Assembly (NCBI GenBank): GCA_002794465.1 | Contig: MTSL01000090.1 | Span: 1 to 21,177 of the forward strand | DNA from: Paramicrosporidium saccamoebae KSL3 | Lineage: Eukaryota > Fungi > Cryptomycota | Length of the DNA stretch: 21,177 nucleotides | Direction of reading: 5' to 3' | Shown: positions 1-21,177 of the stretch, in pieces | How positions within the stretch are numbered: the stretch's first letter is position 1 | Layout: each line of letters opens with the position of its first letter | Notes under the pieces: generated by a model | Seen by the model: only the letters and a program-made list of their open reading frames with translations | Databases searched by the model: none | What the model was told of the DNA's origin: nothing | Made by a program: the position numbers and the translations under genes

Positions 1-2
1 GC

Positions 3-1823
3 GATGACGAAAGGAAGAAGCTGTTTAAGCTCGTTACTCGGTTTTATCTTGGTATCGGGGCGCCGAGTTTTACTGAGACTGATCAATTCTGCAACAAAGT
101 CCCCGAAGCTTTTGGTAATCTTGCCGGCCGCCTCCAGGGCGCGAGTATGGGTATTAAGATTCGCACCTTAATGTTTAACAGCGAGTACTTTTCCAAATGG
201 GTGACTTTGTCAGGTTTCAGCACCGATCTTTCGAAATTCCTCACTTGGGCTCTTGTTGGTCAAATTACATCCAAAGAAAGCATGCAGAAAATAGAAACGT
301 TACATACACGCTGTGGAATGTTTGCTAAAGAGCTGATTATGAAATTTCCACTCTATGAGCAGCTTCTTCAGTCACTTGACCCTGCCGACTGCAGGGAAGG
401 TGAAAAAGTGGCAAAACAATTTGTCGTGGGACTAATACCGGAACTCAATGGTAAGTATGCCGAAGTGGCCAATGCTATTCCTGACGATGAATATGTAGTC
501 GATGTAAACAACGCTTTGAGAACTTCAGACTATCTCTGCGCAGCGGATGGCAAATGCAAGGACGTTAATGCCTATGTTGAGAAATTAAAAGCTGACATGC
601 AGACCACGTTTAGAATGACGATTGGTATGAATGAAAAGACATTGAACAAATTGCTGACTAGTTATAGAGTCCCTACTGAAGAACTTGGTGAAGCGAGAGG
701 GTCAATTTATGATGTTTGTACTAATATTCATGGGGGTACCTTGGAGGCTTGCATCCAAGAAATCTTAAACTACAAAACAGCGGGTGATGCGAACAAAAAG
801 CCTGGTAGATCTCCATCTGCGCAACCGCCTGCCACGGGGGCTCCCAACTCCCCTCTTAACGGCGCAAAAGCGTATTGGAACGACAAAATTTCACAGGACT
901 TTAGGGATCTACTTCGTGACAAGCCATTCTGGACCGACGAAGAAGCAGACAAGGCCAAAACTGCCAGTGCGACACCAGACTATGTCAAGTCTGATGGTAC
1001 GTCCACTGGCCTGGGAGAGAATGATAAGGTTGTTCTAACATATTTGCTAAATAACTTACCGGATGATCGCGATCTAAGGAAGGATATTACTGAGGTTGCA
1101 TCCAGAACGTATATCAAGTCGCTGGGAGTAAAAAATGATAATGTGAGTGGACCAGGAATCATCAGTCGGAAACTGTTTGACAAAGTCAAAGGTTTGCAAG
1201 GCTGTCCCATCGAACAAAGAATTCGGATCCTGATACTCAAAAATGTTGACCTGGCCAAAGAAATTATTCCAGGACAAGATGGGATCTCTGTGGAATGTTT
1301 TCTAGCTTGGGTATATGGCTGTACAACAGAAGAAGACGTAGCCCACGTTATGAAACTTTGGAAAGAAGAGAGAGCTAAACAGTTTATCAAGCATTTTCCA
1401 TTTATGTGGTATCTAACTCGCAAGTTTCACCTGCCACAATTGAATCAGAGCAAGAGTATTGTTAAGGGATTCTTTCACAAGCATGATAATAAGTCGTATG
1501 AAAAGGTGATTGAAGCCATTCCTGAGCTTGAGCTTGATCCGATTGTGGAAAAGTTTTATGAGAACATGCCAGAGTGCTGCACAAGGGAAAATGGCTGCGA
1601 GGCTATAGATCAATATTTTAAGAAACTGATAGATCGTATGACCCAAGTGGTCAATATTCGCATCTGTACTTTTATCACGGATGCATTAATGGGCAACATC
1701 TTCATGACTGCGCTTCCTCTGTCACGCACTAAAAGGACCGCCTTATACGCACCAATCTATGCTTCGTGTAAGGCCGACAAGAAAGTTCTCGATGTAATTG
1801 CCAATGCGTTAGCTAGCCCTTAA
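3..1823 (+). CDS. Lineage-specific protein, terminal paralog L (5'-partial, >606 aa); helical and Cys-containing with a central Pro-rich linker; function unknown
   Basis: The frame of the 147..1823 ORF stays open back to position 3 (DDERKKLFKLVTRFYLGIGAPSF...), so the start lies outside the window. It is colinear with 19349..21175(-), roughly two-thirds identical by eye. AATAAA is at 1843-1848. I recognise no domain. Confidence 0.85.
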   Translation, partial: DDERKKLFKLVTRFYLGIGAPSFTETDQFCNKVPEAFGNLAGRLQGASMGIKIRTLMFNSEYFSKWVTLSGFSTDLSKFLTWALVGQITSKESMQKIETLHTRCGMFAKELIMKFPLYEQLLQSLDPADCREGEKVAKQFVVGLIPELNGKYAEVANAIPDDEYVVDVNNALRTSDYLCAADGKCKDVNAYVEKLKADMQTTFRMTIGMNEKTLNKLLTSYRVPTEELGEARGSIYDVCTNIHGGTLEACIQEILNYKTAGDANKKPGRSPSAQPPATGAPNSPLNGAKAYWNDKISQDFRDLLRDKPFWTDEEADKAKTASATPDYVKSDGTSTGLGENDKVVLTYLLNNLPDDRDLRKDITEVASRTYIKSLGVKNDNVSGPGIISRKLFDKVKGLQGCPIEQRIRILILKNVDLAKEIIPGQDGISVECFLAWVYGCTTEEDVAHVMKLWKEERAKQFIKHFPFMWYLTRKFHLPQLNQSKSIVKGFFHKHDNKSYEKVIEAIPELELDPIVEKFYENMPECCTRENGCEAIDQYFKKLIDRMTQVVNIRICTFITDALMGNIFMTALPLSRTKRTALYAPIYASCKADKKVLDVIANALASP

Positions 1824-1883
1824 ACCCCAACGAGGAACACTCAATAAATGTACTGTAAATATGATTAAACATGAAAGTAATGT

Positions 1884-2066
1884 TTATGAAATTTCTACTA
1901 GACTAGAGTGACACTCCAACATGAAGATGGCCTGATTCACATCCCATCCCAGCATCCGAAGAACGGTCTCGCATTGTCCCAGGGGCTCTATCGCCAGTGT
2001 TCAGCGAGCAGGGTGAGGGAATGCAACGGGGATACTAAGGACTCTTGCGGTATCCTCGAACGAGGA
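1884..2066 (-). pseudogene. Decayed fragment of the PWP2 3' end (copy of 19022-19287)
   Basis: Left + strand ttatgaaatttctactagacta...acactccaacatgaagatgg...gaagaacggtctcgca...gcgagca...ttgcggtat...acgagga aligns to the reverse complement of PWP2's last 266 nt. It has deletions of 33, 4, 48 and 1 nt and a 3-nt insertion. Confidence 0.85.
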
Positions 2067-2458: not shown

Positions 2459-4042
2459 TCAACTCGTGATGAGTGTAATGTTCTTCCCCGACCTAAGGCG
2501 ATTCTGACAAAAGTCTGTAATGATTGCGTTTGCAGCTTTAAGGATGGCGGCTGGCGACTGCTTCGCGGTCCCCAAAGAGACGGAATGCCGCAACGTTATC
2601 CCAAACGAAAAGAGCAAGTATGCCCGAAATACTGCCGGATTTGACTTGGAAGCGAGGAGGCTAGGCGCCTTGACAACCTCGCTGGAATCACAAGGAGGGG
2701 TGCGCGTTTGAACCATGGCAAACAGCTGCACAATTGCCAAAACATCCGAGTTTGCATTTTCTGGAACCTCAATTTCACCATTTGCTGCAAACGTCAACAG
2801 TTGTGTCACTGCCAAGGCACAGTGATCGCATCCCCAAATTAAAGAGCCAATCTTCTCAGTCGATAGAACCAATCCATTTTCAGTGGGATCTGTGAGGAGT
2901 AGATGCACAAGACGATACGAATTCTCCTCCAAACTGCGCTTCAAGGCGTACATTCTAATTGCCTCTGAGCTGGCTCCTTCAGCAAGGCCATTCTCTTCAC
3001 AGAGCAAATCTTCCGCCACATCGTTGATTAACGAGACTACCCTGGATCTCCTCTGAGCAAAGTCTGCAGCAGCATCAAAGAGATATGGCCCAAAGTTGGT
3101 CATTGTTAGATAGAAATCCAAGATGGTAAATGCCTCTTTCGGAGATTGTAGAAGTTTTAGACCTAAAATTGGGTTTGACTCGAGATTCGGGCTTGTGGTA
3201 TTGAGAAGAGATCGGTTTAAGAACATCATGGCGACTGCTCCGCTCATATTTGGAGGTAGTGTGCCCCCGAAATTGACGAGGAAATCTGCAGCATCCTCTA
3301 CAAGAACACGATAGAAGCGCGCAAACGGTCCCGAGTTTCTCCAGTCGCCCTTGTCGCAGCTAAACTGCAGCTGCAATACGGCAATAATCAGTGCATCCAT
3401 AAACGTCCCATCCTCTTCTCCACGTTCAAGATACTCTACCAGCAAGGCCGACAGCAGACGCTCCTGGCCGAGAAAGACAACAATCGACATTATCCAGTCT
3501 TTGAGAACGGCCGATTGAATAACTGATGAAAATTGGCCTACAAGACGACTCTGAAGATTCATCGAGAGTGAAACAAATTGGTTTCCAGAAATCTGAATTT
3601 GGCGCACCAACAATTGCCCCACGGAACTAGACATGATCCTCATGACCATATTTAGCACGCTTTGATCTGTTCCAGTTGCGTTTAACAAAATCTCAAAATC
3701 GTCAACCGTAAACTCGGCCCCGCCAGCAAGATGTCTTTCCACCACAGAAAAGCACACCCAGCGTTTAGCCGACTTGAGAACCATATCATCATTATCATCC
3801 AACAACAAAAATGTCTCGGCCAAAGTCTGGAGAGTTTCGGGCTGTTCTCCTGCAAACACATCATGAAAAGGCTCAAGTTGTGACAAACACCGAACGCTTG
3901 GAGCTTCCTTACACTGTTCATAAACCTTGTTAAACTCTTCTATCACTCCAACAGGGTGGACACTACAATTAACTGCGCTGGGGATGACAGTTCCACAGAG
4001 CTGGGTTACAATCAAGAAACGTATAATGCTCTGGATTATCAT
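2459..4042 (-). CDS. Predicted secreted protein, unknown family A, copy 1 (527 aa, most divergent copy)
   Basis: Long ORF with a hydrophobic N-terminus (MIIQSIIRFLIVTQLCGTVIPSA). It shares the motifs GDWRNSGPFARFYRVLV, LDFYLTMTNF, NSYRLV, TQLL..A...EIEV and RAYLLFSFGITLRHS with the next two ORFs. Confidence 0.85.
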   Translation of the reverse strand: MIIQSIIRFLIVTQLCGTVIPSAVNCSVHPVGVIEEFNKVYEQCKEAPSVRCLSQLEPFHDVFAGEQPETLQTLAETFLLLDDNDDMVLKSAKRWVCFSVVERHLAGGAEFTVDDFEILLNATGTDQSVLNMVMRIMSSSVGQLLVRQIQISGNQFVSLSMNLQSRLVGQFSSVIQSAVLKDWIMSIVVFLGQERLLSALLVEYLERGEEDGTFMDALIIAVLQLQFSCDKGDWRNSGPFARFYRVLVEDAADFLVNFGGTLPPNMSGAVAMMFLNRSLLNTTSPNLESNPILGLKLLQSPKEAFTILDFYLTMTNFGPYLFDAAADFAQRRSRVVSLINDVAEDLLCEENGLAEGASSEAIRMYALKRSLEENSYRLVHLLLTDPTENGLVLSTEKIGSLIWGCDHCALAVTQLLTFAANGEIEVPENANSDVLAIVQLFAMVQTRTPPCDSSEVVKAPSLLASKSNPAVFRAYLLFSFGITLRHSVSLGTAKQSPAAILKAANAIITDFCQNRLRSGKNITLITS

Positions 4043-4390
4043 GTGGACGATTAAAAATTATAGCCCTGGCCAACTGGTAAACACTAGGACGACCAGATCT
4101 GTCTTGTAGTTAGGTCGGGTGCGGGTGCAGGTATTAGTGTAAATGTTAGCTTGAGTGTGGGTGCAAAAGACTTGCTCGGGTTATATGAGTCTGATAGCTG
4201 AACTAGGGTTGTAATACTTTAAATGTTTACACTCTTAGTCTGTGGTCTCTTCCACTACGCGGCGTGACCACGTGCTTTGTTTATTACCAGCCGGTATGGA
4301 CTCGCCGGCATAGTGCCAGCCTTGTCGTTTCTCACCTCTGACCCTTATTTTTACATTTGATTGCTTTATTTCAATGTTTACCGGCAGTCA

Positions 4391-5920
4391 TCACGGGCTA
4401 CGGACATGGATAAATGCGGGGGCACTTTGATGGTGGATTGCGCAATATCTTGTCAACATGACATTTAGTGCTCCAGCATACTCGCTCGGATGGAGGGGGT
4501 CACTCGTGCTCTGCATCACAGAATAACGCAATGGAATTTTGAACCGAAAAAGCAGATAAGCTCTCAAAATAAATGCCCAATTTCGCTCGTCTGATACAAA
4601 GAGCTGTGGCATGTGGATTTCGCAAACATCTCCGGTGCCACAGGGATCAAGAGGCACAGACAGCACGAGCTGATTGTACAGTCGAATGAGATCCTTCTCA
4701 AGGCCACTAAAGCATTCTGTTATTGGAATTTCGTTTCGTTCAGCGTGATACAACAGCTGTATGAATGCCAGTGGCAATGTCGTAACCGCTGAAGCGAGGT
4801 TTCTCACTGTGAGTGCAGTAATGGCAAATTCACCAAAATTTAAATAAAACTCTAGCAATCGGTAGGCGTTTGCGCAGAGCATCACGCCTATAGCATTCAT
4901 AAATCTAATCATGTCATCCAACTCCTCTTCACTGTCATCAGGGTATTTGCTACACGCCCCTGAATCTGGCGCCTTGTGGCGATAGAATAATCGGTGAGAA
5001 TTACCCGCCATATCTGTCAGATAGTCTATTATGCTTAACAATGCGACGCTTCTGTTCCAAAAATCTGCCTTGGAAGCAAATCTTGATTCCTTGAAATCGG
5101 TCAGTGCAAAATAAAAATCAATAGTCTTGAAGCCACTAGAAGCATCCTCCCGGCAATCAAGAGTACATGCTCCACTAAATTCGATTTTCGGGCTCACGCA
5201 GGCCAACAGGCTGACATTGCTCATGAGAACCCAAGCATCGTCCTTTGGACGCTTAAGGGGAACAACAAACTCTGGCATGACTTGTACAACGACCCGAAAG
5301 AAACGTTGCAGGGCTCCGCCAGCGTTCCACTCTCCAAAGTCAGGCACATATGGGAGCTTATAAATGCAATGGAGCACGCGACTCATAAACTTGATCCTAT
5401 CAGCAGGCGGCATAGGTACGGCTTTGTAGGCCCTTAGTAAGATTTTGAAAGTGGCAGCATCCGTTTTACTGTGCACATTCAATAATAGTGCACGTTGAAT
5501 AGTGCGCCGCGGCAAGAATGTGGCCATTTCTTCAACACATACGAGTCGGCAAGATGCCGGTAGTTTCATAATATCATCGGCTTGAGGGAAAGGCCCCTTT
5601 GACAGGACGTCTGCCACAAATACTCTGTCTGCCAGCATCTCCTCAAGCAACTCAATAGCATCAGGGTGATTTTGATGGGCGGCTTGCTTTACAAGTTGGG
5701 AAAAGTCATTAGCCGTGACTCCGTAGGAGATGAATTGACTATTAAAAATCGATGGACTAACCTCCAATATTACCAGCGATGCAAACTTTTCTTCGAGCTC
5801 CTGGTCTTTTCGAAAAGTCGATTCAAAGGCCTCTCCGGTTGGATCTTGGCCTGGTGACAATCTTGAGCCGGTGGCCATACACAGGACCACTAGAAGCCAT
5901 GCACAAGTACTTTTGACCAT
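4391..5920 (-). CDS. Predicted secreted protein, unknown family A, copy 2 (509 aa)
   Basis: ATG at 5920 in a CAGGGT-ATG context (the track start at 5938 is TTG), with signal-like MVKSTCAWLLVVLCMATGS. Motifs are GEWNAGGALQRFFRVVVQ, IDFYFALTDF, RAYLLFRFKIPLRYS and EYAGALNVMLTRYCAIHHQS. AATAAA on the minus strand is at 4365-4370. Confidence 0.88.
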   Translation of the reverse strand: MVKSTCAWLLVVLCMATGSRLSPGQDPTGEAFESTFRKDQELEEKFASLVILEVSPSIFNSQFISYGVTANDFSQLVKQAAHQNHPDAIELLEEMLADRVFVADVLSKGPFPQADDIMKLPASCRLVCVEEMATFLPRRTIQRALLLNVHSKTDAATFKILLRAYKAVPMPPADRIKFMSRVLHCIYKLPYVPDFGEWNAGGALQRFFRVVVQVMPEFVVPLKRPKDDAWVLMSNVSLLACVSPKIEFSGACTLDCREDASSGFKTIDFYFALTDFKESRFASKADFWNRSVALLSIIDYLTDMAGNSHRLFYRHKAPDSGACSKYPDDSEEELDDMIRFMNAIGVMLCANAYRLLEFYLNFGEFAITALTVRNLASAVTTLPLAFIQLLYHAERNEIPITECFSGLEKDLIRLYNQLVLSVPLDPCGTGDVCEIHMPQLFVSDERNWAFILRAYLLFRFKIPLRYSVMQSTSDPLHPSEYAGALNVMLTRYCAIHHQSAPAFIHVRSP

Positions 5921-6368
5921 ACCCTGACGCGGGGCCAAACTTTTCAGCAGGGGCTTTATATATGGGTGGGTACAAAAAGTCTGGTTATTTGGCTTCTGAG
6001 CATGGTACTTTATAATTTTTGAGGATCCATTATGCGATAACCCCGTCAGGATAATTAACGATTGCCATGGCCAAGATCCGCGTCTCTCTCAGCGATCTGT
6101 TGCATGATGTGAGTATTACCACAGCGCAAATATAGATGGGCGACAAGGAACTAACAGTTGGTGTGGACTCGCTGGCACAGTTCCCAAACAGTAGGGAGTC
6201 AGTATTACTTGCCTCTGACTCTCCTTTCCATATTTGAGCAAGTACTCAGCATCCAGCACTCGGCTAAACACTTCATCGCTTTACAGATCCGTTGGCACTC
6301 TCTCTTATAATGGATCCTTTATTCCTGATCCCCTGTTATTCTACTCTACTCTATACTCTCTCTCTCTC

Positions 6369-7976
6369 CTAAAGTAGTTCCTCCGTTTTGGTAATGGGCT
6401 CTTCCGCAATAGACTCTTCATCTTTTGGGCTAATGCGTGCATGTGTGAATGCGGGACGGCTTTGATGGTGAATCGCACAATATCTTTCGAGCATAGCGTC
6501 AATTGCGCCAGCATATTCTGTTGGATCAAGTGGGTCGCTGTAATAAATTAACTTTGTATGCCGCAGCGGAATATCAAACCAAAAGAGAAGATATGCCCTG
6601 ATAAGAATGTCTGAAATCGATTTGCTCGGCGAAAAGAATTCGGGTAGTTGAATCTTACGAGCGGCTCCCGCGCTGCAAGGATCGCGACGGCCTGACGATA
6701 TTAGCTGGTTGTATAGTTGAATCAGCTGCCTGGCATGCTTACCACAATTCCCTGGTATCTCTATGACGCTCCTCTCAGCGTGATACAGCAGTTGAGTGAG
6801 TACCAACGGTAACGCATCGGTTCCAGCTACCAATTTGACAATCTTGTCGCTGCTCAAAGAAATTCCACTTTCATTGCAGTAGAATTCCAGGGCACTGTAA
6901 GCTTCCACGCCGAGCAACCATCCGAGCACATCCATGGAGCGCTTCTCTGCTTCCAGAGCGGTCATCTGGTCACTAAAATATTCTCCGTTTGGCATTTCCC
7001 AAGATTTTGTAACACTGTCAGATAATCCGTTCATCAATCCCAACAGGGCATTCCTTCTTTGCCAATAGTCTTCCGGTGTAAAGTTTGCTTGTTTAAAATC
7101 CGTCACGGCGATATAGAAATCGATAGCCATGAAGCCTTCATGAACGTCCCCGCCGTACAGCTTAGTACAGTTTTCAGAAAACATAAGAGCGGGACTCATG
7201 CACGACAGTAGTCCATGATTATTGATGATAAAGGATGCTTCGGAATCTGCTTCAGTATCACACGGAATGAGATCTGGAATCAGTTGCACAACGGTCCTAA
7301 AGAAGCGCTGGAATGGCCCACCCTCGTTCCAATCTCCATAATCCGGAGTGTATGGGAGCAAGTCTATTTTCGCCAAAATTTCATCCACGAATCTGATTCT
7401 TCTGGAGAAATCCATGGGGATAGTCGTGTGCGTTGCTAATAAGACTTTGAAAATATCAACGTTTGTTTGCCTGCCCACAGTGGTCACGAGCGCATACTCG
7501 ATCGCCTGGCAAGACATAAATGGAGCAAGTTTTTTAAAAAATAAAAGTCGGTACGGTGCACGCAGTTGCATAATCTCCTCTACTTGTGGGAATGGGCCTT
7601 GCGACAAGATATTTGTCACAATCGTCTCATCCTCCAAGATGTCTTCAAAAGCTTGGAGATAGACACGAGCATGGTCTCTGTTACCGTTGTAAGCGAGGTG
7701 ATTCACAATGTGAACAAAGTCCATGGCAATAAAGTTGCAAAAGTTTACAGGAGTGCTTTCGCGGCCAGTCTGGTCATAGCAGGTCCAGCGGTGGAGCGCT
7801 GCTGCTAAGCCTCCAGTCTCGCTGTCCCAGCCGGAAGGACTAGACGGACTCTGAACTGGAAAATAATCTAAAAGGTCGGTACTGATCGTCTCTTGCCCAC
7901 CCAGCTGCCCCTTGCCGGAGGCGGCTGTCGCCACACCTAATAACACGAAAAGCCACAAATATTTCATCCGCCACAT
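6369..7976 (-). CDS. Predicted secreted protein, unknown family A, copy 3 (535 aa; alternative ATG at 7967)
   Basis: ATG at 7976 has the same CAGGGT-ATG context as copy 2, with signal-like MWRMKYLWLFVLLGVATAASG. Motifs are GDWNEGGPFQRFFRTVVQ, IDFYIAVTDF, RAYLLFWFDIPLRHT and EYAGAIDAMLERYCAIHHQS. AATAAA on the minus strand is at 6318-6323. Confidence 0.88.
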   Translation of the reverse strand: MWRMKYLWLFVLLGVATAASGKGQLGGQETISTDLLDYFPVQSPSSPSGWDSETGGLAAALHRWTCYDQTGRESTPVNFCNFIAMDFVHIVNHLAYNGNRDHARVYLQAFEDILEDETIVTNILSQGPFPQVEEIMQLRAPYRLLFFKKLAPFMSCQAIEYALVTTVGRQTNVDIFKVLLATHTTIPMDFSRRIRFVDEILAKIDLLPYTPDYGDWNEGGPFQRFFRTVVQLIPDLIPCDTEADSEASFIINNHGLLSCMSPALMFSENCTKLYGGDVHEGFMAIDFYIAVTDFKQANFTPEDYWQRRNALLGLMNGLSDSVTKSWEMPNGEYFSDQMTALEAEKRSMDVLGWLLGVEAYSALEFYCNESGISLSSDKIVKLVAGTDALPLVLTQLLYHAERSVIEIPGNCGKHARQLIQLYNQLISSGRRDPCSAGAARKIQLPEFFSPSKSISDILIRAYLLFWFDIPLRHTKLIYYSDPLDPTEYAGAIDAMLERYCAIHHQSRPAFTHARISPKDEESIAEEPITKTEELL

Positions 7977-8009
7977 ACCCTGGTTGCCGGGGACTCCGGC
8001 TGATACGCG

Positions 8010-8117
8010 GCGAGTCTGTAAAGTAGTCAATACGTAGCGAGTCTGTAAAATGGTCAATACGTGGCGGGTCTGTAAAATAGTCAATGCGTAGCGAGTCTAT
8101 AAAGTAGTGAAATGGTA
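8010..8117 (+). repeat. 27-bp tandem repeat x4, consensus GCGAGTCTGTAAARTAGTCAATACGTA, just upstream of family A copy 3
   Basis: Units start at 8010, 8037, 8064 and 8091. The repeat explains the TILQTRxVL extension in the ORF track. Confidence 0.9.
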
Positions 8118-8222
8118 ATTCTATCTCTAGCATGATCGGATGATTGACAATACTTAATGAAACCATTTCTTGTTTGGAGTGTTTGTTAGCGAGTTCCTGT
8201 GCGTAGTGGGAAAGATGATCTG
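8064..8222 (-). promoter_or_regulatory. Upstream module shared with 9712-9878 (candidate promoter)
   Basis: Colinear blocks aaatggtaat, ctat.tctagca, cttaatga.acca, tagcgag and gcgtagtggg..a.gatgatctg occur in both regions. The regulatory role is inferred from position only. Confidence 0.55.
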
Positions 8223-8442
8223 CGTCGCGCAGCGGGGAAAGTACCACGTCGCAGGCGTAAAGAGACGGGATGAGGATTCGTCCACTGATAATCCTGGAAT
8301 CGTAAGAATACGGGTTTCACTGTCCTTAAATACCCAGCCAACCAATACTCTACATCGCACTTATATCACAATTGTATCACGCTTGTATCACATGGACTAT
8401 TGAGGGTTGTTAGAGCAGAGGAAGATTTATTCCCTAAGTGAA

Positions 8443-9585: not shown

Positions 9586-9711
9586 GAATTTCAGAAAAAG
9601 AACTCGCTTCACCAGCCGCCAGGGGTATCAGATGACCTGTGGGCAAGATTATCACCATCCCTGGCCAAGCTGCGTGGTAATCAGTTTTGCATATGACAAG
9701 TTTTTGGATTA

Positions 9712-11195: not shown

Positions 11196-11230
11196 ACAAA
11201 ACACTCATGCTCTTTACCATTAAATAGTTG

Positions 11231-13446
11231 ATGCGCATTAAACGATTGGACGATGCTGTCGTTCATCGGATTGCCGCAGGAGAGGTACTCGTTTCGAGAT
11301 GACTGAGGTGGCAGGTTATAGTCAGGCCATGCAATGCCATCAAGGAGCTTCTTGAAAACTCGTTTGATGCTGGAGCAACAAATATCACCATTTCAATTCA
11401 GGACAATGGATACAAGTCTTTTACCATTCAAGACAATGGCCATGGAATCATGGTAGGATTGCATTAACAGTGTCTCTAAGATTGCAGAAGGAGGACTTGC
11501 CACTATTGTGTGAACGGTATGCAACCAGCAAACTATGCTGTCTGGATGACCTTCGGAAACTGACCACTTTTGGCTTCCGTGGCGAGGCGCTGGCTAGTCT
11601 TAGTCATATTGCGCGACTCTCTGTTGTTACTCGAACGGCAGGAAGCGCTGTTGGCTACAAGGCCTCGTATATTGATGGACGACTTGTAGGAGAGGCGACG
11701 CCAACGGCGGCTAATCCGGGCACAACTATTACAGTTCTGGACCTGTTCTACAACAATGCAGTGCGGGTGACAGGAAAAGCAGAGGAGTATTCGAGGATTA
11801 TGGAAGTTGTGCAGAGATATGCAATTAACAAAGCAGGTGAATGCGCAGTGTCTCTAAGACGAAGTGGTGGAAAGGCCGACTTTGTCACTCGACAAGGACA
11901 AGACCAAATATCAGTGATTCGTACCATTTTTGGAGAAAAGGTCTCATCAGCGCTTTTATCCCTCGAGGGGAGCAATGGAAATAGTGGGAATAACGGGGAT
12001 AATATGGTTACTGGACTCGTCAGCAACGCATATCATCAACAAAAATCTCTAGTGTTTATCCTATTTATCAACGGTCGTCTTGTGGACAGCCCACGTCTTA
12101 AAAAGGCCATTTCCAATTTGTATTCTGAAGTTCTCCTGAAGCAAACCAACCCGCTGGTCTACTTGCACCTCAAGCTTGCACCTGAAATATTGGACGTGAA
12201 TGTACACCCGACCAAGAAGGAAGTCATATTTCTGAACGAAGATCAAGTGATAGACACTGTTGTCGCCGTAATCCGGTCAAGGATATCAGATGCTGGAATA
12301 GTGGGAATGCATGTTCCAACTCTAAAGATTCCCGAAACAGTTCCGCAGGTCGTGTTGGAGACTGTTCGTGATGTGGCTCCGACTCGCAGTGTGTTACCAA
12401 TTCGCAGTGTGGCACCAAGTCGCAGTGTGATAACTATGCTGAATGCATCTCCCCAACAATATACAGCCTCTACACGAAACTCGTCGCTACCGTTTCAGCG
12501 GATTCATACAGATCCAAAGAATCGCACCTTGGACTATTTTATTCACAAAAGAGCTCGTGTTGATGAAGAAAGAGTCTTTAATCAACCACCTACTAACATG
12601 TCTTTGCATCTTTCTTCAGAAAATCCATTTTTTACTGAATCATCCAAACCTGCACTGCCGGTAAGCGAGCGTGAACATGAGCATGAGCGTGATAATGGGA
12701 ATGAGAATGGGAATTTGCGTCCACGTGAGCATGTGAATTTACGTTTGCATGAGGGTTTGCGTTTGGAAAGCAACCGAGGATGCAGCCCTCAAATTACTGA
12801 AATTTTGCAACGGCATTCCTTTGTCGGGTTACTTGATCGGCGCCGCTGCTTTATTCAATTTGAGACGAGCTTATTATTGATGGATGTTCCACGATTGCTA
12901 ACAGAATGGATCTTTCTAAGCATTGTCTTTACTGACACTGCCGTTGAGTCAATACCGAGAGGATTGTCAATCGACTCTTGTTTAGATGAATTTTTTGCCA
13001 CCGAGCCCGCCACTATTGAGGCCACTCTGGTCGACAGGGCCGTTCTGAAAAGCGAGATTATCGATTACATCGAGGCGAAAGCGGCCGTTTTAGGACACCT
13101 TATTGACATTGTGGATGGCACAGTGACTGCAGTCTATGATCCTTTTCGTTTGCGTGGACAGCACTTTGAGGCAAGATTGGGCGGATTCATATTTCGCTCT
13201 ATCATTGATGTCGACTGGGATAGTGGCGATCATGTCAAATCCGTGTACAGGCTGTATGCTGAATTCCTCGTATCATTAATCTGGGATACCGAGGACATTA
13301 GGCCACACATTGAGCATAGCATCCTCCCCGCAATGAAGCGATTGCCGAGCGAGAGTGACGGGTTCCCATCCGTTTGTGCATCAAATGGCTCCTTGTTACA
13401 GGTTGCCACTGTGCACGATCTCTACAAAATCTTTGAAAGATGTTAA
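11231..13446 (+). CDS. MLH1: DNA mismatch repair protein MutL homolog 1; exons 11231-11284, 11315-11452, 11488-13446 (716 aa)
   Basis: Removing introns 11285-11314 (30 nt) and 11453-11487 (35 nt) gives [38 protein letters not shown]...DNGHGI...TFGFRGEALASLS (GHKL ATPase). It also has DVNVHPTKKEV and the MLH1-specific C-terminal FERC. Confidence 0.97.
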
Positions 13447-13475
13447 CCATTTGGTCAGCAGCCAGTATGATACGG

Positions 13476-13494
13476 GGTTTATTGGGAATAAACC
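13476..13494. terminator. Palindrome GGTTTATT-GGG-AATAAACC giving AATAAA on both strands (candidate bidirectional polyadenylation signal)
   Basis: Perfect 8-bp inverted repeat 30-48 nt after the MLH1 stop. The function is inferred. Confidence 0.45.
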
Positions 13495-14274
13495 AATTGG
13501 GACGTGGTGAGGGGATTGCCATGGATGAAGCGCAGCTCTTCAATTTAATAGCCCATTTACAACCCTCACCAGCACAGTGGTGGTCAGAATAATCCATTAC
13601 TTTTCACTAGTAGAGGGCTACTATTATAAACACTCCATTTGCTGGTGGGATTGGGTCGTTATTGCAAGTATTACACTAGCCAATTAATTCACCACTACTG
13701 CAACACCCAGATCACTCAACCCGACGTACTAAAATTCTGTCCAACGATCTCTTCCCATAGCCCATGTGAATTGGCTTCCTTGTTACTATAATTCGAAATA
13801 CCAGAACGAACACTTTTACATAATACTCCAAACAGCTGATTCGATGTCATACAGGTACCATTCTTGTCGCAGGAATCGGGCATGCCTACTCTGGCATCTT
13901 TTCCTGCTTTAGACCCACGGGAGGCAAGCTTGGTGTAAATAGCCGCGAGAGTGGAAGCCGCAATAAAGTTCATAGCTCATAAGAGTCGTTGGCCCTTGTA
14001 GAAAATTGCCAAAGTACTTTGATGCACCGCATGGCCAGCGTATCAATAATTGACCAATTATCGCATGATGGACTTTAAGCCTATAACAATACATGTAAAT
14101 TCTCGGCAGAGGCGCGTCGATGTGGGTGTTTCCTGATCCCGTGGTCATAATTCTTCCTCGCATAAATCTCAGATATTGCCTGGGAAGGTCAGCGGATACC
14201 AACAACTCGACTATTAACAATTGCGAACCCGCAGAGCTGGAATGGTCATTGGTACTTGCTCAAGCAGTCACTCT

Positions 14275-14494
14275 GTGATGTAGAGGTAGAGGATTGATCA
14301 GTCGGGTATTTGAAGATGTAAGAATATACTTGTGTGCTAGAGTGGATCGCTTTGCTGGGTATTTGAGGACAAGGAGATGTGTATCCATACTGCTATAGGA
14401 TGGGCAGTGAATAGGTTTCCGCCTGACAAAGTCCGTGATATTATCCCCACTACACGACAATCCCCACTACGCGACAATTCCCACTGCGCGACAA
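14275..14494 (-). repeat. Non-coding segment duplicated in inverted orientation at 2181-2375; includes a 17-bp tandem x3 (14444-14494)
   Basis: Shared blocks include tatggatacacatctc, caaatacccagcaaag, ccactctagcac, caaataccc.act.atcaa and ctctac.tcac. Confidence 0.85.
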
Positions 14495-14563
14495 TAATGG
14501 GATTCTTACGTAATGTATAAAGATTACTAGCGCCGATTCAGCCCGTGATTGCACCGGGGGCGT

Positions 14564-14869
14564 TTATTGAACCTTTTTCACTCTACTGGGGGGCGCAACA
14601 AGCACAATGGCATCTCCTCTTACAAACAACACGCCCCTCCTCTCCACCTCTGTCTTCCATCCCTCGCCCTCGCCGGCGTTTGTGCGTTTCGTCTCCTCCA
14701 CCTCGCCCAACACCAAATTCATGTGTTGGTCAAACGCCTACCCTGTCAATACTGTTCCTCATAATACGTGTAATCGGCCGCGAAGCTCGCGTTCGCCCTT
14801 TAGCTTGACGTAAATGATTTCATCGAGACTTAATTTTATCAGGTCTAATGGTTCCTCTAGTCCAGTCAT
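14564..14869 (-). CDS. LSM3: U6 snRNA-associated Sm-like protein LSm3; exons 14869-14768 and 14737-14564 (91 aa)
   Basis: Manual translation gives [34 protein letters not shown]|[16 protein letters not shown]...[14 protein letters not shown]. The 30-nt intron is GTATTA...TTGACAGGGTAG. The gene is not in the ORF track. Confidence 0.95.
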
Positions 14870-14903
14870 TATGAATAATCAATTATCCGTAAAGTGGAGG
14901 GGT

Positions 14904-15647
14904 TTATTGGAGGGGATCGTGGTAGACTAGTGTCTCTTTGAGAGGGGTAATTTTGGAAAGATTATTCAGACGATGCCAAGGCGAATCATTGGCCAACAAC
15001 ATGTCACGAGCAATGGCCTTGAACCATGGCGTATAGATATCGGGACGCTCGGCAAGTTCGATGCGTAGCTCTTCAGGCCCTACCCAGCGGGTCTCCATTA
15101 CCTCTTCTTGATTAGGACGTACTGTTACATCTTTGACTACGGTATACAAATGATCCACTACACTGTCACCAAAATGCAACCAAACTACACTCATGCTCAC
15201 CCCAATTGGGATCGGCGGACAATGCGGCATAGCGCATCTTTCCCATAAACACCAGCTCGTCACTTGAAATGCCATCAATACCAAGCTCCTGTTGCAATTT
15301 TCGTTGTATGGCAGCGCAGATGTCGGCGTCAGAACGAAGTGGATGGCTGCAGACCGTATTGGACCAGATGCCGGGAAAGGTGTGCTTCCCCAGGGCTCGA
15401 CGTTGCAGCAGCAATCGGTGCTGGGGGTTGAATAGAAAGATGCTGAACGCACGGTGCAACGGCAATTGGTGGGGGTCAGATGAGGTCAAATAATGGCCTA
15501 TAAATCAGCCGACCAAGGATACCCTCTACACGAGTGTTTTGAGGCATGTCCAATAGGGTTATCGTGCAAGTCTACCAAAATGCACTGTTCCTGCTCCAGA
15601 AACCCCTTTTGTACTGATGTAATAAGCCTCCTGGCCAACTTTGACAT
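14904..15647 (-). CDS. IDI1: Isopentenyl-diphosphate delta-isomerase (type 1, Nudix fold); exons 15647-15530, 15497-15189, 15157-14904 (226 aa)
   Basis: Removing introns of 32 nt (15529-15498) and 31 nt (15188-15158) joins EQCILVDLHDNPIGHASKHSCH, LHRAFSIFLFN, TFPGIWSNTVCSHP, WGEHELDHL and YTPWFK. Confidence 0.95.
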
Positions 15648-15743
15648 GTCAATAAAACAATGAAACTGTTTATTTTTTACACATCCCCTTCCCGAGGTTA
15701 TTTACAATTAGGTCGTCATCATGGATCAAATAGCCTAGATCGC

Positions 15744-16838
15744 TCATGAATATGACTTTTGACTTGACATTTTCATTTCATCAGTCTCATCTCGCCCACT
15801 CGACTCGAGATATAATTCGGTGAGATTGGCAGCAAAGATGGAGGTGGGTAGAGGCAGGAATATGACACTGGTGAGCATGATTAGACCAGATAGAAGCTTT
15901 CCCAGCGGTGTTTGGGGGACAATATCACCATAACCCACGGTGGCCATGGTGACTACGCAGAGCCAGATGGCATCAAACATGTTTTGCACACTGCATAACA
16001 GTGTTTTGTCGGCTTCGAGGAGCCAGACGCCATCCTGCAGGACACATACGCTAGTCTCGGCAAAGAACAAACCGCCACTAAAGAGCAGACCGGCGCCAAA
16101 GACATAGACAAAGAGGAACATGAAAGCCAGACCAGAGCGACGCACGGCATGGAAGAACAGGCCGATACGAGGGAAATTGCCCAAGGTGATTCGAAAGAAG
16201 CGCGCAAAACGCACAAGCCGCAGTAGTCGGAGACTGGTGTATCTCCTGACACCGTTCACAGTGAGGGCGGGGAACAGCCAATAGAAATCAAAGATCCATG
16301 GGATCACAGTCAGTACATCAATGAGGGCATCCCAACTCTGCAAATAGACGGTGAGGGTGGGTTGACAGGTCAATTTTAGTAGCATATCCAGTACAAAATG
16401 CACCGATATTGCAGACTCGAGGGCAAACCACATGAATACCTGTTGATTGCTGGTTGACCAAGCGGGAACAGACTCGCAGCAAAACAGCAGTAGCGATAAC
16501 ATTACTAGCGCATCCATGTACCAACTAAACCACCGTGCGCCTCGAGAGCTATCTGGATTACTCAGAAACACATAAATGCAATGAACATGTCTCTTTGGTT
16601 CAAGCGGACCCCCACAAACAGAATTGTGTGAATTCAAAAGAGCAGAGTTGTTTAGGTCATGCCAATCCCGACAACCACACCACCTTTGCTCGTTTGGTTC
16701 CTGTAAATCCCGGCAACCACACCACCCTTGCTTGTTTGGTTCCTGTAACTCCAGACAACCACATTCACATTCATACCCACATCCGCATCCGCATCCACAA
16801 GGAACCGTCTCATTAGGGTCAGTCACATCGACACCCAT
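15744..16838 (-). CDS. Voltage-gated (6TM, Kv-type) potassium channel subunit (364 aa; start uncertain)
   Basis: Pre-S1 FLSNPDSSRGAR, S4 LRLLRLVRFARFFR, pore WLCVVTMATVGYGDIVP and S6 LPLPT. The only in-frame ATG upstream of S1 is at 16838. AATAAA on the minus strand is at 15669-15674. Confidence 0.9.
   Translation of the reverse strand: MGVDVTDPNETVPCGCGCGCGYECECGCLELQEPNKQGWCGCRDLQEPNEQRWCGCRDWHDLNNSALLNSHNSVCGGPLEPKRHVHCIYVFLSNPDSSRGARWFSWYMDALVMLSLLLFCCESVPAWSTSNQQVFMWFALESAISVHFVLDMLLKLTCQPTLTVYLQSWDALIDVLTVIPWIFDFYWLFPALTVNGVRRYTSLRLLRLVRFARFFRITLGNFPRIGLFFHAVRRSGLAFMFLFVYVFGAGLLFSGGLFFAETSVCVLQDGVWLLEADKTLLCSVQNMFDAIWLCVVTMATVGYGDIVPQTPLGKLLSGLIMLTSVIFLPLPTSIFAANLTELYLESSGRDETDEMKMSSQKSYS
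16665..16799. repeat. 42-bp tandem repeat x2.3 followed by six degenerate hexamers, within the channel's 5' ORF
   Basis: Units start at 16665, 16707 and 16749. The hexamers ttcaca ttcata cccaca tccgca tccgca tccaca span 16764-16799. Confidence 0.85.
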
Positions 16839-16851
16839 CGACCGGGGGTGT

Positions 16852-19287
16852 ATGCGACTCAACTACAAATTCTCCAACCTCTGTGGAGTGGTGTACAAAA
16901 AGGGAAACTTGGTGTATACGACGGACGGAAGAGGACTGTACAGTGCCGTGGGACGCCGAGTGACGCATTTTGATTTAACAGAGAACACGAGCACAACGTT
17001 TCCGTTTGAGCTGCCGACAAATGTGCAACGGATTGCCGTATCGCCAGATGGGATGCTATTAGTAGCAGTGGATACAACAGGCCAAGCAGTAGTGGTGTCA
17101 ATACCCCATCGCATAGCATTGCATTATGTCAACTTTCGAACAGCAGTGACGGCAATGACGTTCAGTCCGGACGGCACAAAGTTGGCAGTGGCAACAGATG
17201 GACGAGTGCGCATATGGCGTACTCCAAGCGGACAGCGCGAGTTTGCATCATTAGTGCTGGAAAAGACAATGGGCGGTCATACAGAGGAGATTGTCAGTTT
17301 TGATTGGTCAAGCGACTCGCGTTATTTACTGACTGCATCGCATGACATGACGGCGCGTCTGTTGGATTTGCGCCGAGATGAAGAAAATCCACAGTTTGTG
17401 CCCATTGAGCTACGCGCACATCGTCATCCGCTCTGTGGAGCCTATTTTGCCCATAAAGACCAACAAGTTGTGACAGTGGCCCGAAACGGAAGTCTCTTTA
17501 TATGGAAATTTGATCCTGTCCGTGGAACAATGGAGGAGAGAATGCCCACCATTCGGCACCACCTGCTCCAAGAATCGAATGAGCAGGAAGAAAATGCCAC
17601 TGCATCTAATACGCCCTCTTTGTCTTTTCGAACCAAAGTCACGGCAGTGGATTACAACAAAGAAAACCATCTGTTGGTAGTCACCTTTAGCAATGGCGTC
17701 TTTAGCATTTTTGTCATACCGTCATGTTCCATGGCGTTTATTACTGATACTACTACATCCGCCGACATGGCCACACCCACCGCTACTACACCTATTTATA
17801 CGTTGTCCCTTACTCAGTCCAAAGTCACTTCAGTGGCCATCAATGCGACAGGCGAATGGATTGCCTTGGGGATTGCGGAACACGGACAGCTACTCGTGTG
17901 GGAGTGGCGTAGTGAATCGTTTATACTGAAACAACAGGGCCATGCATTGGCCATGACATCATTGGATTATTCGCCCGATGGACAGACCATTGTGACGGGG
18001 AGTGCCGATGGACGCGTCAAGTTATGGCACGCGTCATCGGGACTGTGCTACGCCACGTTTGCAGAACATACGGCATCAGTGACGGCGGTAGAGTTTTCTG
18101 CAAAGAGCGGCAAAATTGTCGTCAGTGCGGCCAGCGACGGCACTGTGCGCGCCTATGATATGCTGCGATATCGCAACTTTCGCACTTTTACCACTCCCAC
18201 GCCGGTGCAGTTCATGTCATTGGCCATTGATCCGAGTGGCGAAGTGGTGGCAGCCGGCACCTTTGACACCTTTGAAATCTTTTTGTGGTCCATGCAGACG
18301 GGACAATTGTTGGAGATTATCGCCGGTCACACCGCGCCCATCTCTGCCCTCTCCTTTGATCCCCTCGGCCATCGTTTAGCCTCCGCTTCTTGGGACCGCA
18401 CCGTACGACTATGGGACGTCTTCCAACGCGACAAAAATATGCAAAGTCTCGACCATTCTGCCGAAGTCACCGCCGTTACCTTCAGACCTGATGGCGCCGA
18501 GGTGGTCGCTTGCACATTGGCTGGTGAAATTGTCACGTGGGATGTTGAACTCGCCACCGTCACCGGAGTGATTGAGGCCCGAAGAGATGTGGCTGACAAG
18601 CCGCTCACATCCTGTGCCCTCAAATCAGTGTGCTACTCCCCCGATGGCACGTGGCTGTTGGTGTCGGGATCCTTTCCCTTCATTGCACTATACGATGTCG
18701 CCAACAAAGTGCTGCTGCGTCGCTATCCGTTGACAAAGATGCGGCGTGGACAGTCGGTGGAGATGAATGTTCCATCGGTGAAAATGGCTCCCACTAATCG
18801 CGCATTTGCTGCTCTCTCTCCTGACGGTTTGGTAATCCATTCGCTCGACGAACAGCTAATCTTTGATCCTTTTGATCTTGAACTTGACATTACATCCGAG
18901 AACATTCAAACTGCTTTGGTTTCGGGCGAGCATCTCAAGGCATTCATTATGGCATTGCGATTGAACATTCCAAAGGTAACCGAACACGTCATCGTCTCCA
19001 TCCCCGTCAATGTCCTGTCTCTCCTCGTCCGGGGAATACCGCAAAAGTATTTATTGTCCACATTGCATGCCCTCACTCTGCTCGCCCCCCATCGTGTGGA
19101 ATTGCTGCTGCGATGGGTCGTTGCTGTGCTCGCCGAACATACTCTGACCATAAAGTCGTTGGGACGGTGCGAGACTGTTCTTCGGGTGTTGTTGGGCAAG
19201 GTAAAGGCCGATTATGAGGTGCTGGGTCGGGTTGCGAATCAGACCATCTTCATGTTGGAGTGTCGTAGTCTAGTAGAAATTTCATAA
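16852..19287 (+). CDS. PWP2: Periodic tryptophan protein 2 (Utp1), WD40 SSU processome subunit (811 aa)
   Basis: The conserved N-terminus MRLNYKFSNLCGVVYKKGNL fixes the start at 16852. It also has LLVWEWRSESFILKQQGH, DGTVRAYDMLRYRNFRTFT, multiple WD repeats and a C-terminal FDPFDLELDIT/Utp12-like region. Confidence 0.96.
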   Translation: MRLNYKFSNLCGVVYKKGNLVYTTDGRGLYSAVGRRVTHFDLTENTSTTFPFELPTNVQRIAVSPDGMLLVAVDTTGQAVVVSIPHRIALHYVNFRTAVTAMTFSPDGTKLAVATDGRVRIWRTPSGQREFASLVLEKTMGGHTEEIVSFDWSSDSRYLLTASHDMTARLLDLRRDEENPQFVPIELRAHRHPLCGAYFAHKDQQVVTVARNGSLFIWKFDPVRGTMEERMPTIRHHLLQESNEQEENATASNTPSLSFRTKVTAVDYNKENHLLVVTFSNGVFSIFVIPSCSMAFITDTTTSADMATPTATTPIYTLSLTQSKVTSVAINATGEWIALGIAEHGQLLVWEWRSESFILKQQGHALAMTSLDYSPDGQTIVTGSADGRVKLWHASSGLCYATFAEHTASVTAVEFSAKSGKIVVSAASDGTVRAYDMLRYRNFRTFTTPTPVQFMSLAIDPSGEVVAAGTFDTFEIFLWSMQTGQLLEIIAGHTAPISALSFDPLGHRLASASWDRTVRLWDVFQRDKNMQSLDHSAEVTAVTFRPDGAEVVACTLAGEIVTWDVELATVTGVIEARRDVADKPLTSCALKSVCYSPDGTWLLVSGSFPFIALYDVANKVLLRRYPLTKMRRGQSVEMNVPSVKMAPTNRAFAALSPDGLVIHSLDEQLIFDPFDLELDITSENIQTALVSGEHLKAFIMALRLNIPKVTEHVIVSIPVNVLSLLVRGIPQKYLLSTLHALTLLAPHRVELLLRWVVAVLAEHTLTIKSLGRCETVLRVLLGKVKADYEVLGRVANQTIFMLECRSLVEIS

Positions 19288-19348
19288 ACATTACTTTCAT
19301 GCTTAATCATATTTACAGTACATTTATTGAGTGTTCCTCGTTGGGGGT

Positions 19349-21175
19349 TTAAGGGCTAGCTAACGCTTTGGCAATCACATCGAGAACTTTGTTATCGGAA
19401 TCACACGAAATACCGATCGGTCCGTATAAACTGTTCCTTTTAGCGAGTGAAATAGGAAGCGCAGATATGAAGTCGTTGGCCGTTAATGTACGCATCATAA
19501 AAATACAGATGCGATTATTGACCACTTGGATCATATGATCTATCAGTTTCCCAAAATATTGAGCTATAGGCTCGCAGCCACTTTCCTTTGTGCAGAACTC
19601 TGGCATTCCCTTATAAAAGTTGTCCACAATCACATCAAGCTCAGACACAGGAATGGCTTCAATCACCTTTTCATACGACTTATTATCATGCTCGTGAAAG
19701 AATCCCTCAACAATACTCTTGCTCTGATTCAATTTTGCCACGTAAAACTTGGATCTTAGATAATCTATAAATGGAAAATGTTTGATAAACCGTTTAGTTT
19801 TCTCTTCGTTCCAATGGTTCATAATTTTGGCTACGCCTTCCTCTGTTGTACAGCCATATACCCAAGCTAGAAAACGTTCCACAGAAACCCTATTTTGTCC
19901 TGGAATAATTTCTTTGGCCAGGTCAACATTTTTGAACATCAGGATCCGAATTCTTTGTTCGATGGGACAGCCTTGCATACCTTTGACTCTGTCAAAAATT
20001 TCCGCACTGATGGTCCCTGATCCACTCACATTATCCATTTTTACTCCCAGTGACTTGATATACGCCTTGGATGCAACCTCAGCAATACCTTTTCTTGCAT
20101 CGGGATCATTCGGTAAGTTATTTAGCAAATATGTTAGAACAACCTTATCATCCTCTCCCAGGCCAGCGGACGTACCATCAGACTTGACATAGTCTGGTGC
20201 CACACTGGCAGTTTTGGCCTTGTCTGCTGCTTCGTCGGTCCAGAATGGCTTGCCACGAAGTAGATCCTTAAAGTCCTGTGAAAGTTTGTCGTCCCAATAC
20301 GCTTTTGTTACAGCGGGTGGGGGCTTGGGTGTTGTGGCAGGCGGTTTCGCAGGTGGAGTTCCACCAGGCTTTTTGTTCGCATCACCCGCTTTTTTGTACT
20401 TTAAGATTTCTTTGATGCAAGCCTCCAATGGATTAATAATAATACCTTTAGGAGCAAGACAAACATGACTAATTGACGCTTTCGCTCCATCAAATTGTTC
20501 AGTAGGGACTCCATAACTAGTCAGCAATCCGTTCAAGAACTCCTCTGCCGCGCCAATGGTCACTCTAAACGATTCGTCCATTTTCTCCCTCAAATACTCA
20601 ACATAGTCATTAAGGTCCTTGCATCTGCCATCCGCTGCGCAGAGATAGTCTGAATCTCTCAAAAAATGTCTTACAATGGATACATATTCATTGTCAGGAA
20701 TAGCATTGGCCACTTCGAAATAATTACCATTGAGTTCCGGTATTAGTCCCACGACAAGTTGTCTTGCCACTTTTCCGTCGTTCTTGCAGTCGGCAGGGTC
20801 AAGTGACTGAAGAAGCTGCTCATAGAGTGGAAATTTCATAATCAGCTCTTTAACAAAAATTCCACAGTGTATATGTAACTCTTCCATTTTCTGCATGCTT
20901 TCTTTGGATGTAATTTGACCAACAAGAGCCCAAGTGAGGAATTTCGGAAGATCGGTGCTGGAACCTGCCAAACTCATTTGGTTGGAAAAGTGCTCGCTGT
21001 TAAACATTAAGGTGCGAATCTTCATACCCATACTCGAGAGCTTGAGGCTGCTGTCAAAATTACCAAAAGCTCCGGGGACTTTGTTGCAGAATTGATCAGT
21101 CTCAGTAAAACTCGGCGCCCCGATGCCAAGATAAAACCGAGTAACGAGCTTAAACAGCTTCTTCCTTTCGTCATC
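19349..21175 (-). CDS. Lineage-specific protein, terminal paralog R (5'-partial, >608 aa)
   Basis: The frame of ORF 19349..21031 stays open to the window end (DDERKKLFKLVTRFYLGIGAPSFTETDQFCNKVPGAFGN...). It is a paralog of 3..1823. AATAAA on the minus strand is at 19323-19328. Confidence 0.85.
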   Translation of the reverse strand, partial: DDERKKLFKLVTRFYLGIGAPSFTETDQFCNKVPGAFGNFDSSLKLSSMGMKIRTLMFNSEHFSNQMSLAGSSTDLPKFLTWALVGQITSKESMQKMEELHIHCGIFVKELIMKFPLYEQLLQSLDPADCKNDGKVARQLVVGLIPELNGNYFEVANAIPDNEYVSIVRHFLRDSDYLCAADGRCKDLNDYVEYLREKMDESFRVTIGAAEEFLNGLLTSYGVPTEQFDGAKASISHVCLAPKGIIINPLEACIKEILKYKKAGDANKKPGGTPPAKPPATTPKPPPAVTKAYWDDKLSQDFKDLLRGKPFWTDEAADKAKTASVAPDYVKSDGTSAGLGEDDKVVLTYLLNNLPNDPDARKGIAEVASKAYIKSLGVKMDNVSGSGTISAEIFDRVKGMQGCPIEQRIRILMFKNVDLAKEIIPGQNRVSVERFLAWVYGCTTEEGVAKIMNHWNEEKTKRFIKHFPFIDYLRSKFYVAKLNQSKSIVEGFFHEHDNKSYEKVIEAIPVSELDVIVDNFYKGMPEFCTKESGCEPIAQYFGKLIDHMIQVVNNRICIFMMRTLTANDFISALPISLAKRNSLYGPIGISCDSDNKVLDVIAKALASP

Positions 21176-21177
21176 GC

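Follow-up and report, generated by a model that had tools for sequence, protein, structure and literature searches.

The contig examined here raises the question of why an assembled sequence should begin and end on the same homologous nucleotide of two inverted gene copies, and whether such an arrangement could act as a recombinational switch. The window, meaning the whole stretch of DNA that was analysed, is the entire contig MTSL01000090.1 of assembly GCA_002794465.1 (21177 bp, without N) from Paramicrosporidium saccamoebae KSL3, a member of the Rozellomycota and an intranuclear parasite of Saccamoeba (PMC5701793). Its two ends are inverted copies of one gene, here called paralogs A and B, which face inward across ~17 kb. 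A sequence-only reading of the contig had proposed that crossovers within the shared 5' parts of the two genes could flip the whole segment, exchanging variable gene bodies behind the outer promoters in a regulated variant switch comparable to antigenic variation. The analysis favours a different explanation, which taken as a whole seems likely to be correct: an old inverted duplication followed by patchy gene conversion between the copies and positive selection on their products, with contig ends that mark a collapsed repeat.

The inverted repeat is directly visible in the contig. Its two arms, of ~2.05 and 2.16 kb, flank the single-copy genes of the interior and match over ~1954-1969 nt at 86-88% identity; BLASTN pairs positions 1-1954 with 21177-19220 at 86.5%, and gapped homology extends to ~2053-2075 on the left and to ~19036 on the right. 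The 3' 606 codons of paralog A occupy 1-1823 on the plus strand (stop codon 1821-1823, open from nt 3), and the 608 codons of paralog B occupy 19349-21177 on the minus strand (stop codon 19349-19351). Starting at the contig edge, both open reading frames (ORFs) run inward in frame 3, and both have their 5' ends outside the contig. That the window ends fall within coding sequence, as had been proposed, is borne out by the protein itself, as residues 2-207 of A align with its own residues 357-560 (E = 3e-7); the window start lies inside the first of these two modules, and therefore the coding sequence continues upstream of nt 1. The variable part of the proteins had been put at ~550 amino acids, a figure that falls short of the 606 and 608 amino acids actually found in the two ORFs. 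Globally the proteins are 72% identical (69% by BLASTP), and their alignment contains two gaps only, of 3 and 1 amino acids, both of them frame-preserving.

Similarity is distributed unevenly along the arms. The first mismatches fall at 53, 106 and 120, which leaves a near-identical 5' segment at 1-119 of the plus strand that pairs with 21059-21177 and holds 2 mismatches (98% identity). These values, together with the identity of nt 1-52 and the placement of both ends on one homologous nucleotide of inverted paralogs, agree with those first reported for the contig, and the accompanying estimate that about a third of residues differ is roughly right. However, the picture of a near-identical 5' part followed by a variable rest does not hold, since arm identity is a mosaic, from 67% to 99% per 100-nt window, with no simple division into a conserved 5' end and a variable remainder. 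No other 119-nt stretch of the arms is as similar as the segment at 1-119 (mismatch-shuffle P = 0.002), which, set against a neutral estimate of 5.7-8.5%, gives a binomial P of 0.03 to 0.002; this segment probably represents the inward limit of the latest conversion tract. Further inward, two runs are exactly identical, one of 61 nt (232-292) and one of 68 nt (326-393). Beyond the stop codon of paralog A, a conserved 3' intergenic flank (1824-1886) is ~96% identical to 19288-19348 in the right arm and is recognisable in a related metagenomic contig described below.

The position of the contig ends can be understood from the way in which the genome was assembled. The KSL3 assembly was made from 80-nt trimmed Illumina reads with Velvet 1.2.10 at k = 53 and MetaVelvet, and its contigs were binned by emergent self-organizing map (ESOM) on 3-kb windows, giving 221 scaffolds with a total of 7.3 Mb (PMC5701793). 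K-mer counting revealed that nt 1-52 are the exact reverse complement of 21126-21177 and that nt 1-53 are not. In the output of a de Bruijn assembler such as Velvet, adjoining nodes overlap by k-1 bases. The perfect terminal identity of 52 nt is thus k-1 for k = 53, and the arms first differ at base 53. This is the form taken by contig ends at collapsed repeats in a de Bruijn graph (for a general description of the model, see PMC4859950), where the shared end equals k-1 and the fork lies at the first distinguishing base. Because the terminal identity is exactly k-1, both ends would leave the same upstream node, and the overlap at 1-52 is interpreted as the trace of a single node that forks into the two arms and ends the contig on both sides. 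The mismatches at 53 and 106 are spaced 53 nt apart, so that no 53-mer is common to the arms from nt 1 inward until 232, and for this reason the fork never re-closes as a bubble.

At least the k-mer that precedes the fork would be common to both copies, which supports the earlier proposal that identity continues outside the window and explains both breaks. The two internal identical blocks hold 9 and 16 shared 53-mers, and Velvet bridged both. As it bridged these internal runs, which are longer than k, but not the outer one, the outer shared stretch is probably longer than the 61- and 68-nt runs and extends beyond the read-pair span. A shared node shorter than the binning threshold would likewise drop out of the deposit. 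The contig thus appears to break on both sides at the point where the assembler could not pass the shared 5' part of two copies. Since any inverted repeat that exceeds the library span breaks a contig in the same manner, the breaks are uninformative on flipping, and the coincidence of both ends on one homologous base, being the k-1 of the assembler, marks a collapsed repeat and is no evidence of inversion. Collapse in the de Bruijn graph explains both end points of the window completely but does not explain the biology of the paralogs. Assembly artefacts of the hairpin or chimeric type were also considered and rejected, given that the arms differ by ~13%, their indels preserve the frame, and 17 kb of unique genes are enclosed between them.

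Within the arms, the differences are concentrated at sites that alter the protein. Counting by the Nei-Gojobori method, with confidence intervals (CI) from bootstrapping, gave 33 synonymous and 216 nonsynonymous differences between A and B, with a synonymous divergence (dS) of 0.091, a nonsynonymous divergence (dN) of 0.169 and a directly measured dN/dS of 1.86 (95% CI 1.36-2.75; P(omega <= 1) = 0.0002). The differences number 100, 85 and 64 at codon positions 1, 2 and 3, respectively, and 5.7% of 4-fold sites differ. The 12.8% nucleotide divergence is thus interpreted as mostly amino-acid change driven by positive selection, over a neutral background of ~6-9%. Synonymous divergence is itself uneven, at ~3% in codons 1-150, 0 in codons 301-350, and ~16-17% in codons 151-300 and 351-400 (permutation P = 0.034 for heterogeneity along the gene). 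Patchy gene conversion would give a pattern of this kind.

Searches of large protein collections place A and B in what appears to be an orphan, lineage-restricted family with three metagenomic members besides. Neither protein has a Pfam, NCBIfam or PDB sequence match, and matches to MetQ (E = 0.04 to 0.4) were dismissed as noise. Among 5.8 billion clustered proteins, A and B match each other only, and a HMMER search over 1.84 billion representatives adds P0003 (E = 4e-40), P0004 (E = 1e-23) and P0005 (E = 7e-4), all of which sit on short contigs from Joint Genome Institute (JGI) metagenomes 3300042203 to 3300042205; the literature returned no entry for these three identifiers. From the KSL3 genome itself, these searches of 5.8e9 and 1.84e9 proteins returned two family members only. 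A word-index protein search with a profile of 5 sequences likewise returned only P0001, the deposited partial model of paralog A, and P0002. A scan of a metagenome collection with the family profile yielded 600 pattern matches and no relative, in a collection that evidently lacks the contigs bearing P0003-P0005.

The proteins appear to be built of two modules of ~200-270 amino acids each, joined by a Pro-rich linker. In an alignment of seven module rows, one Tyr, Leu, Trp, Pro and Ile and two Cys are invariant. Based on this 7-instance alignment, AlphaFold modelled a single module with a predicted local distance difference test score (pLDDT) of 81.3 and a predicted template modelling score (pTM) of 0.79, and the predicted structure is all-helical, with a small hairpin at the Cys pair. 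The full-length model, which drew on a 2-sequence alignment, was unusable (pLDDT 35.7). A Foldseek search of the module model against PDB and BFVD revealed no fold relative, with best E values of ~0.7-0.9 and TM-scores of at most 0.24. The N-terminus of P0003, MKLTTIAVLWISTNLFEAVTG, was judged by eye to be signal-peptide-like, and A and B are probably secreted.

Two further observations concern this family. The deposited partial model P0001 (3-2096) looks wrong, as it splices out the conserved C-terminus of A, CKADKKVLDVIANALASP, which is common to B, P0004 and P0005, and then runs on through the relic of a WD40 gene described below. In addition, a search of the KSL3 genome for polar-filament proteins failed to find any, and the failure was attributed to rapid evolution (PMC5701793). 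It is pure speculation that fast-evolving and probably secreted proteins such as A and B, with a Pro-rich linker and conserved Cys pairs, are of the type that such a search would miss.

The history of the pair is recorded in part by this relic. The right arm ends on its inner side with the intact C-terminal end of the WD40 gene (19036-19287, plus strand, within ORF 16624-19287), from which the relic derives. In the left arm, at 1887-2053 on the minus strand, lies a direct trace of the last ~83 codons of this gene (tblastn E = 2e-11), which is frameshifted and lacks 33 and 52 nt in comparison to the right arm. Because the left arm bears this broken copy of the WD40 3' end, sequence would have moved from the right locus to the left locus.

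A comparison with L002, the 4.8-kb metagenome contig (GC content 0.46) that encodes P0003, suggests that this event is old. L002 carries, in order, P0003 on the plus strand, the conserved 3' flank, relic-like sequence, and finally the C-terminal end of a sec1 homologue on the minus strand, sec1 being the first of three tandem genes that adjoin the left arm in KSL3. This synteny is directly observed. The two sec1 genes are 75% identical in amino acids over the last 60 residues of sec1 and 80% identical in nucleotides. The L002 3' flank matches the left arm over 89 nt at 67% identity (E = 9e-8) and the right arm over 96 nt at 64% (E = 6e-4). The part of this flank that matches the WD40 coding end is collinear with it (P = 0.002 and 0.007 against shuffles; P = 0.6 for the control strand). 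L002 can thus be regarded as the orthologous left locus of a related species, and it seems already to contain the relic, for which reason the inverted duplication appears to be older than the split from this metagenomic relative.

If so, A and B are far more alike than their age would predict. For sec1, dS between the species is 0.59, versus 0.09 between A and B, and the two paralogs are 72% identical to each other but 33-35% identical to P0003. With interspecies dS at ~0.6 and inter-arm dS at 0.09, the comparison is most simply read as a sign that the inverted arms underwent gene conversion with each other once the species had split, and were homogenised by it. Sustained dN/dS of at least 1 at a dS of ~0.6 would give the 33% identity seen between A and P0003.

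Two features of L002 are noted separately. Its tandem genes at 612-2327 and 2665-4038 begin with closely similar signal peptides, MKLTAATIYVLWVSVSPFETVMG and MKLTTIAVLWISTNLFEAVTG, and in the product of 612-2327 the signal peptide is followed by a proline-rich tail of ~300 amino acids. This upstream ORF was not counted as a family member (hhalign probability 2%), the resemblance being signal-peptide-like only. Furthermore, the stop codon of P0003 lies at 4036-4038 of L002, yet homology to A runs on to 4233 in the same region; the interruption (4036-4090) could be a short intron, a frameshift or a pseudogene.

The favoured explanation begins with an inverted duplication that would have carried the WD40 3' end from the right locus to the left, giving the A/B pair before the split from the metagenomic relative. 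Afterwards, gene conversion would have homogenised the arms patchily, positive selection would have driven the amino-acid sequences apart, and homogenisation would be most recent at the outer edge, between the 5' coding sequence and ~nt 119. Velvet (k = 53) would have collapsed this outer part into one node and terminated the contig where the graph first forks, so that both ends would come to lie on one homologous nucleotide. Crossovers between the arms, if they occur now and then, would also invert the 21 kb passively, but the locus gives no sign of a regulated switch.

Several points weigh against this explanation. The evidence is confined to the contig, and the shared node, with its length, its flanks and the number of its copies, lies outside it, as do the N-termini of A and B, whose secretion is deduced from a homologue. 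The low divergence of nt 1-119 is just modestly significant in comparison to the neutral rate (P ~0.03 to 0.002), and purifying selection on its 39 codons could account for it. The proposed relic in L002 corresponds to a short match, ~90 nt at 63-67% identity. Additionally, similar neutral rates are assumed for the two species, and an L002 lineage evolving 5- to 6-fold faster would mimic concerted evolution, which is argued here with the left locus of the relative.

If the arms do recombine, as their concerted evolution supports, both orientations might be present among cells or strains through occasional crossovers, as a passive polymorphism with no regulatory role. The geometry proposed by the sequence-only reading is right in this respect, since crossing over within the common 5' part would turn ~21 kb around, so that each gene body would end up at the outer flank of the other. 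An inversion of this type is found on Saccharomyces chromosome XIV, where a 24-kb flip/flop region lies between 4-kb homogenised inverted repeats of Centroid-family genes and inverts repeatedly as a by-product, without regulation (Salzberg et al., 2022; PMC9731477). The architecture is shared, with ~20 kb and ~ten genes (roughly 10-15 ordinary genes by a wider count) between inverted, fast-evolving paralogs of a lineage-restricted family that are served by no dedicated recombinase and homogenised by conversion, as also seems to be the case at the KSL3 locus. However, in Saccharomyces the 4-kb repeats hardly differ and the region has been documented in either orientation, whereas the arms here are 86-88% identical in the window and near-identical at the outer edge only, and the gene family is unrelated. 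As the near-identical tract within the window is short (119 nt) and the sample is the single cultured strain KSL3, a standing polymorphism is possible but rather unlikely. Two other accounts do without recurrent recombination or without a simple pair. A recent, one-off inverted duplication with no later conversion would attribute the mosaic to uneven selection and the L002 relic match to chance or to a fast lineage, and it can draw on the marginal synonymous heterogeneity (P = 0.034), the shortness of the relic match and the possibility of purifying selection on the conserved 5' part. It is nevertheless improbable, because the family gene of the relative already lies beside sec1 in the same orientation with a homologous 3' flank, and a dS of 0.59 versus 0.09 needs the new copy to have arrived at the exact old site, which is gene conversion renamed. 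Alternatively, more than two copies could share the 5' segment, with further members or a dispersed repeat on unbinned or undeposited contigs, so that the break would mark a multi-copy repeat. Short contigs may indeed have been lost in ESOM binning on 3-kb windows, which kept 221 scaffolds, and in L002 the gene immediately preceding P0003 also starts with a similar signal peptide. On the other hand, no third homologue of this genome appeared in any protein search, and the fork falls on one nucleotide at both ends, which is what precisely these two arms would produce, so that there is only a small chance that additional copies are involved.

A programmed switch is the most far-reaching alternative, in which the 21 kb would flip often, one variable body at a time would stand behind a single active promoter, and expression of the two paralogs would be mutually exclusive. 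In the bacterial Hin, Gin, Fim and shufflon systems, inversion exchanges C-terminal coding parts behind a fixed 5' part. Such systems need short recombination sites and an adjacent recombinase gene, whereas here the repeats are 2-kb gene copies and no recombinase was found: a Pfam search of 18 proteins (16 window ORFs of at least 100 amino acids and 2 from L002) detected no recombinase, integrase or transposase domain, in keeping with the earlier statement that the window encodes none. A recombinase is dispensable in Ogataea polymorpha, in which a regulated 19-kb flip/flop of the mating-type (MAT) locus occurs between identical 2-kb inverted repeats by homologous recombination, without a site-specific recombinase (PMC5720833). 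This fungal system is similar to the KSL3 locus in size and geometry, but it relies on features of its own, namely centromeric silencing of the proximal MAT locus and switched genes that lie beside, not within, the identical repeats. The KSL3 locus, with two genes only, arms that are mostly diverged, a host that has no adaptive immunity and a collapsed node that hints at like upstream parts, resembles Saccharomyces chromosome XIV far more than Ogataea MAT. In Pneumocystis, another fungal parasite with a secreted or surface protein, the major surface glycoprotein (MSG) expression site consists of the upstream conserved sequence (UCS) and a conserved 5' junction, the conserved recombination junction element (CRJE) common to ~80 donor genes, through which variable bodies are joined to one promoter and leader (PMC2743713, PMC10622565). 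In outline this is the proposed switch; however, MSG variation draws on an extensive subtelomeric repertoire and depends on one expression site, whereas the KSL3 locus has two genes and a non-immune host.

Features of the locus in keeping with such a switch include the inverted arms with a shared 5' part that continues outside, the exchange of sequence between the arms, and products that are under diversifying selection and probably secreted. Against it, there are two variants only, the host is an amoeba without adaptive immunity, and the arms differ by 12-13% along most of their extent, which makes them a poor crossover substrate, unlike the identical repeats of known switches. The comparison with antigenic variation is not supported, and two family members, an amoeba host and arms of this divergence all argue against it. 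Moreover, if the upstream sequence is identical in both copies, a swap alters nothing, and the collapsed node hints that the upstream parts are alike. A programmed switch is for these reasons considered very improbable. Its most specific form would involve a long, perfectly homogenised outside repeat and two differing flanks, one of which drives expression, with cells alternating between secreted variants of a novel fold, and the prospect of this being the case is slight. If true, it would constitute a two-state recombinational switch in an early-diverging fungus, combining Ogataea-like geometry with Pneumocystis-like body swapping.

The most solid new facts are an orphan, probably secreted two-module family, a fold unmatched in the PDB, dN/dS above 1, and apparent concerted evolution across 17 kb. 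A and B thereby constitute one of few candidate host-interaction or spore-surface families in the Rozellomycota. Should both orientations exist, the range of inverted-repeat flip/flop regions would widen beyond budding yeasts to include the base of the fungal tree.

The single-copy interior that a crossover would invert (2459-19287) contains three tandem genes for secreted paralogs, an ORF at 8443-9612, RPL18, MLH1, a Nudix/IDI-like gene, a K+ channel gene and the WD40 gene. The tandem paralogs (2459-8084, minus strand), of which sec1 is the first, encode proteins of 527, 515 and 571 amino acids that share 22-25% pairwise identity and match nothing in Pfam or NCBIfam. All three begin with a hydrophobic stretch resembling a signal peptide, and together they form a second lineage-specific secreted family, which adjoins the left arm of the A/B pair. 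The deposited model at 6369-9585 looks wrong, as it merges ORFs 6369-8084 and 8443-9612 into a 918-amino-acid product. In the MLH1 region (11231-13446), the long ORF lacks the N-terminal ATPase part, and the deposited model begins at 11231; at least one short intron would therefore lie near 11231-11470, so that the window genes are not all intronless. The position of MLH1 in the interior is taken to be coincidental. Neither tRNA genes nor Rfam families were found in the window.

Small repeats are also present between and within the interior genes. A segment at 2082-2400 matches the reverse complement of 14280-14600 at ~79-89%, with a third partial copy at 8264-8341. An ancestral inverted duplication of 14280-21177 followed by a 4.5-kb deletion on the left was considered for this match, but the third partial copy suggests a small dispersed repeat instead of a large ancestral duplication. 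The repeat covers ~80-260 nt at three intergenic sites, 2181-2343, 14327-14494 (inverted) and 8264-8341 (direct), and holds three copies of the 17-nt unit TTGTCGCGTAATGGGGA; it may represent a mobile or regulatory element of small size, or what is left of a larger ancestral duplication. In addition, there are three minisatellites. The first, at 10860-11034, consists of 8.6 copies of a 21-nt unit between RPL18 and MLH1, and the second, at 8003-8108, consists of 3.9 copies of a 27-nt unit directly 5' of the probable ATG of the third secreted paralog. The last, at 16664-16763, has 2.4 copies of a 42-nt unit, encodes Cys/Gly-rich N-terminal repeats of the K+ channel ORF, and sits in the short divergent interval common to the K+ channel and WD40 genes.

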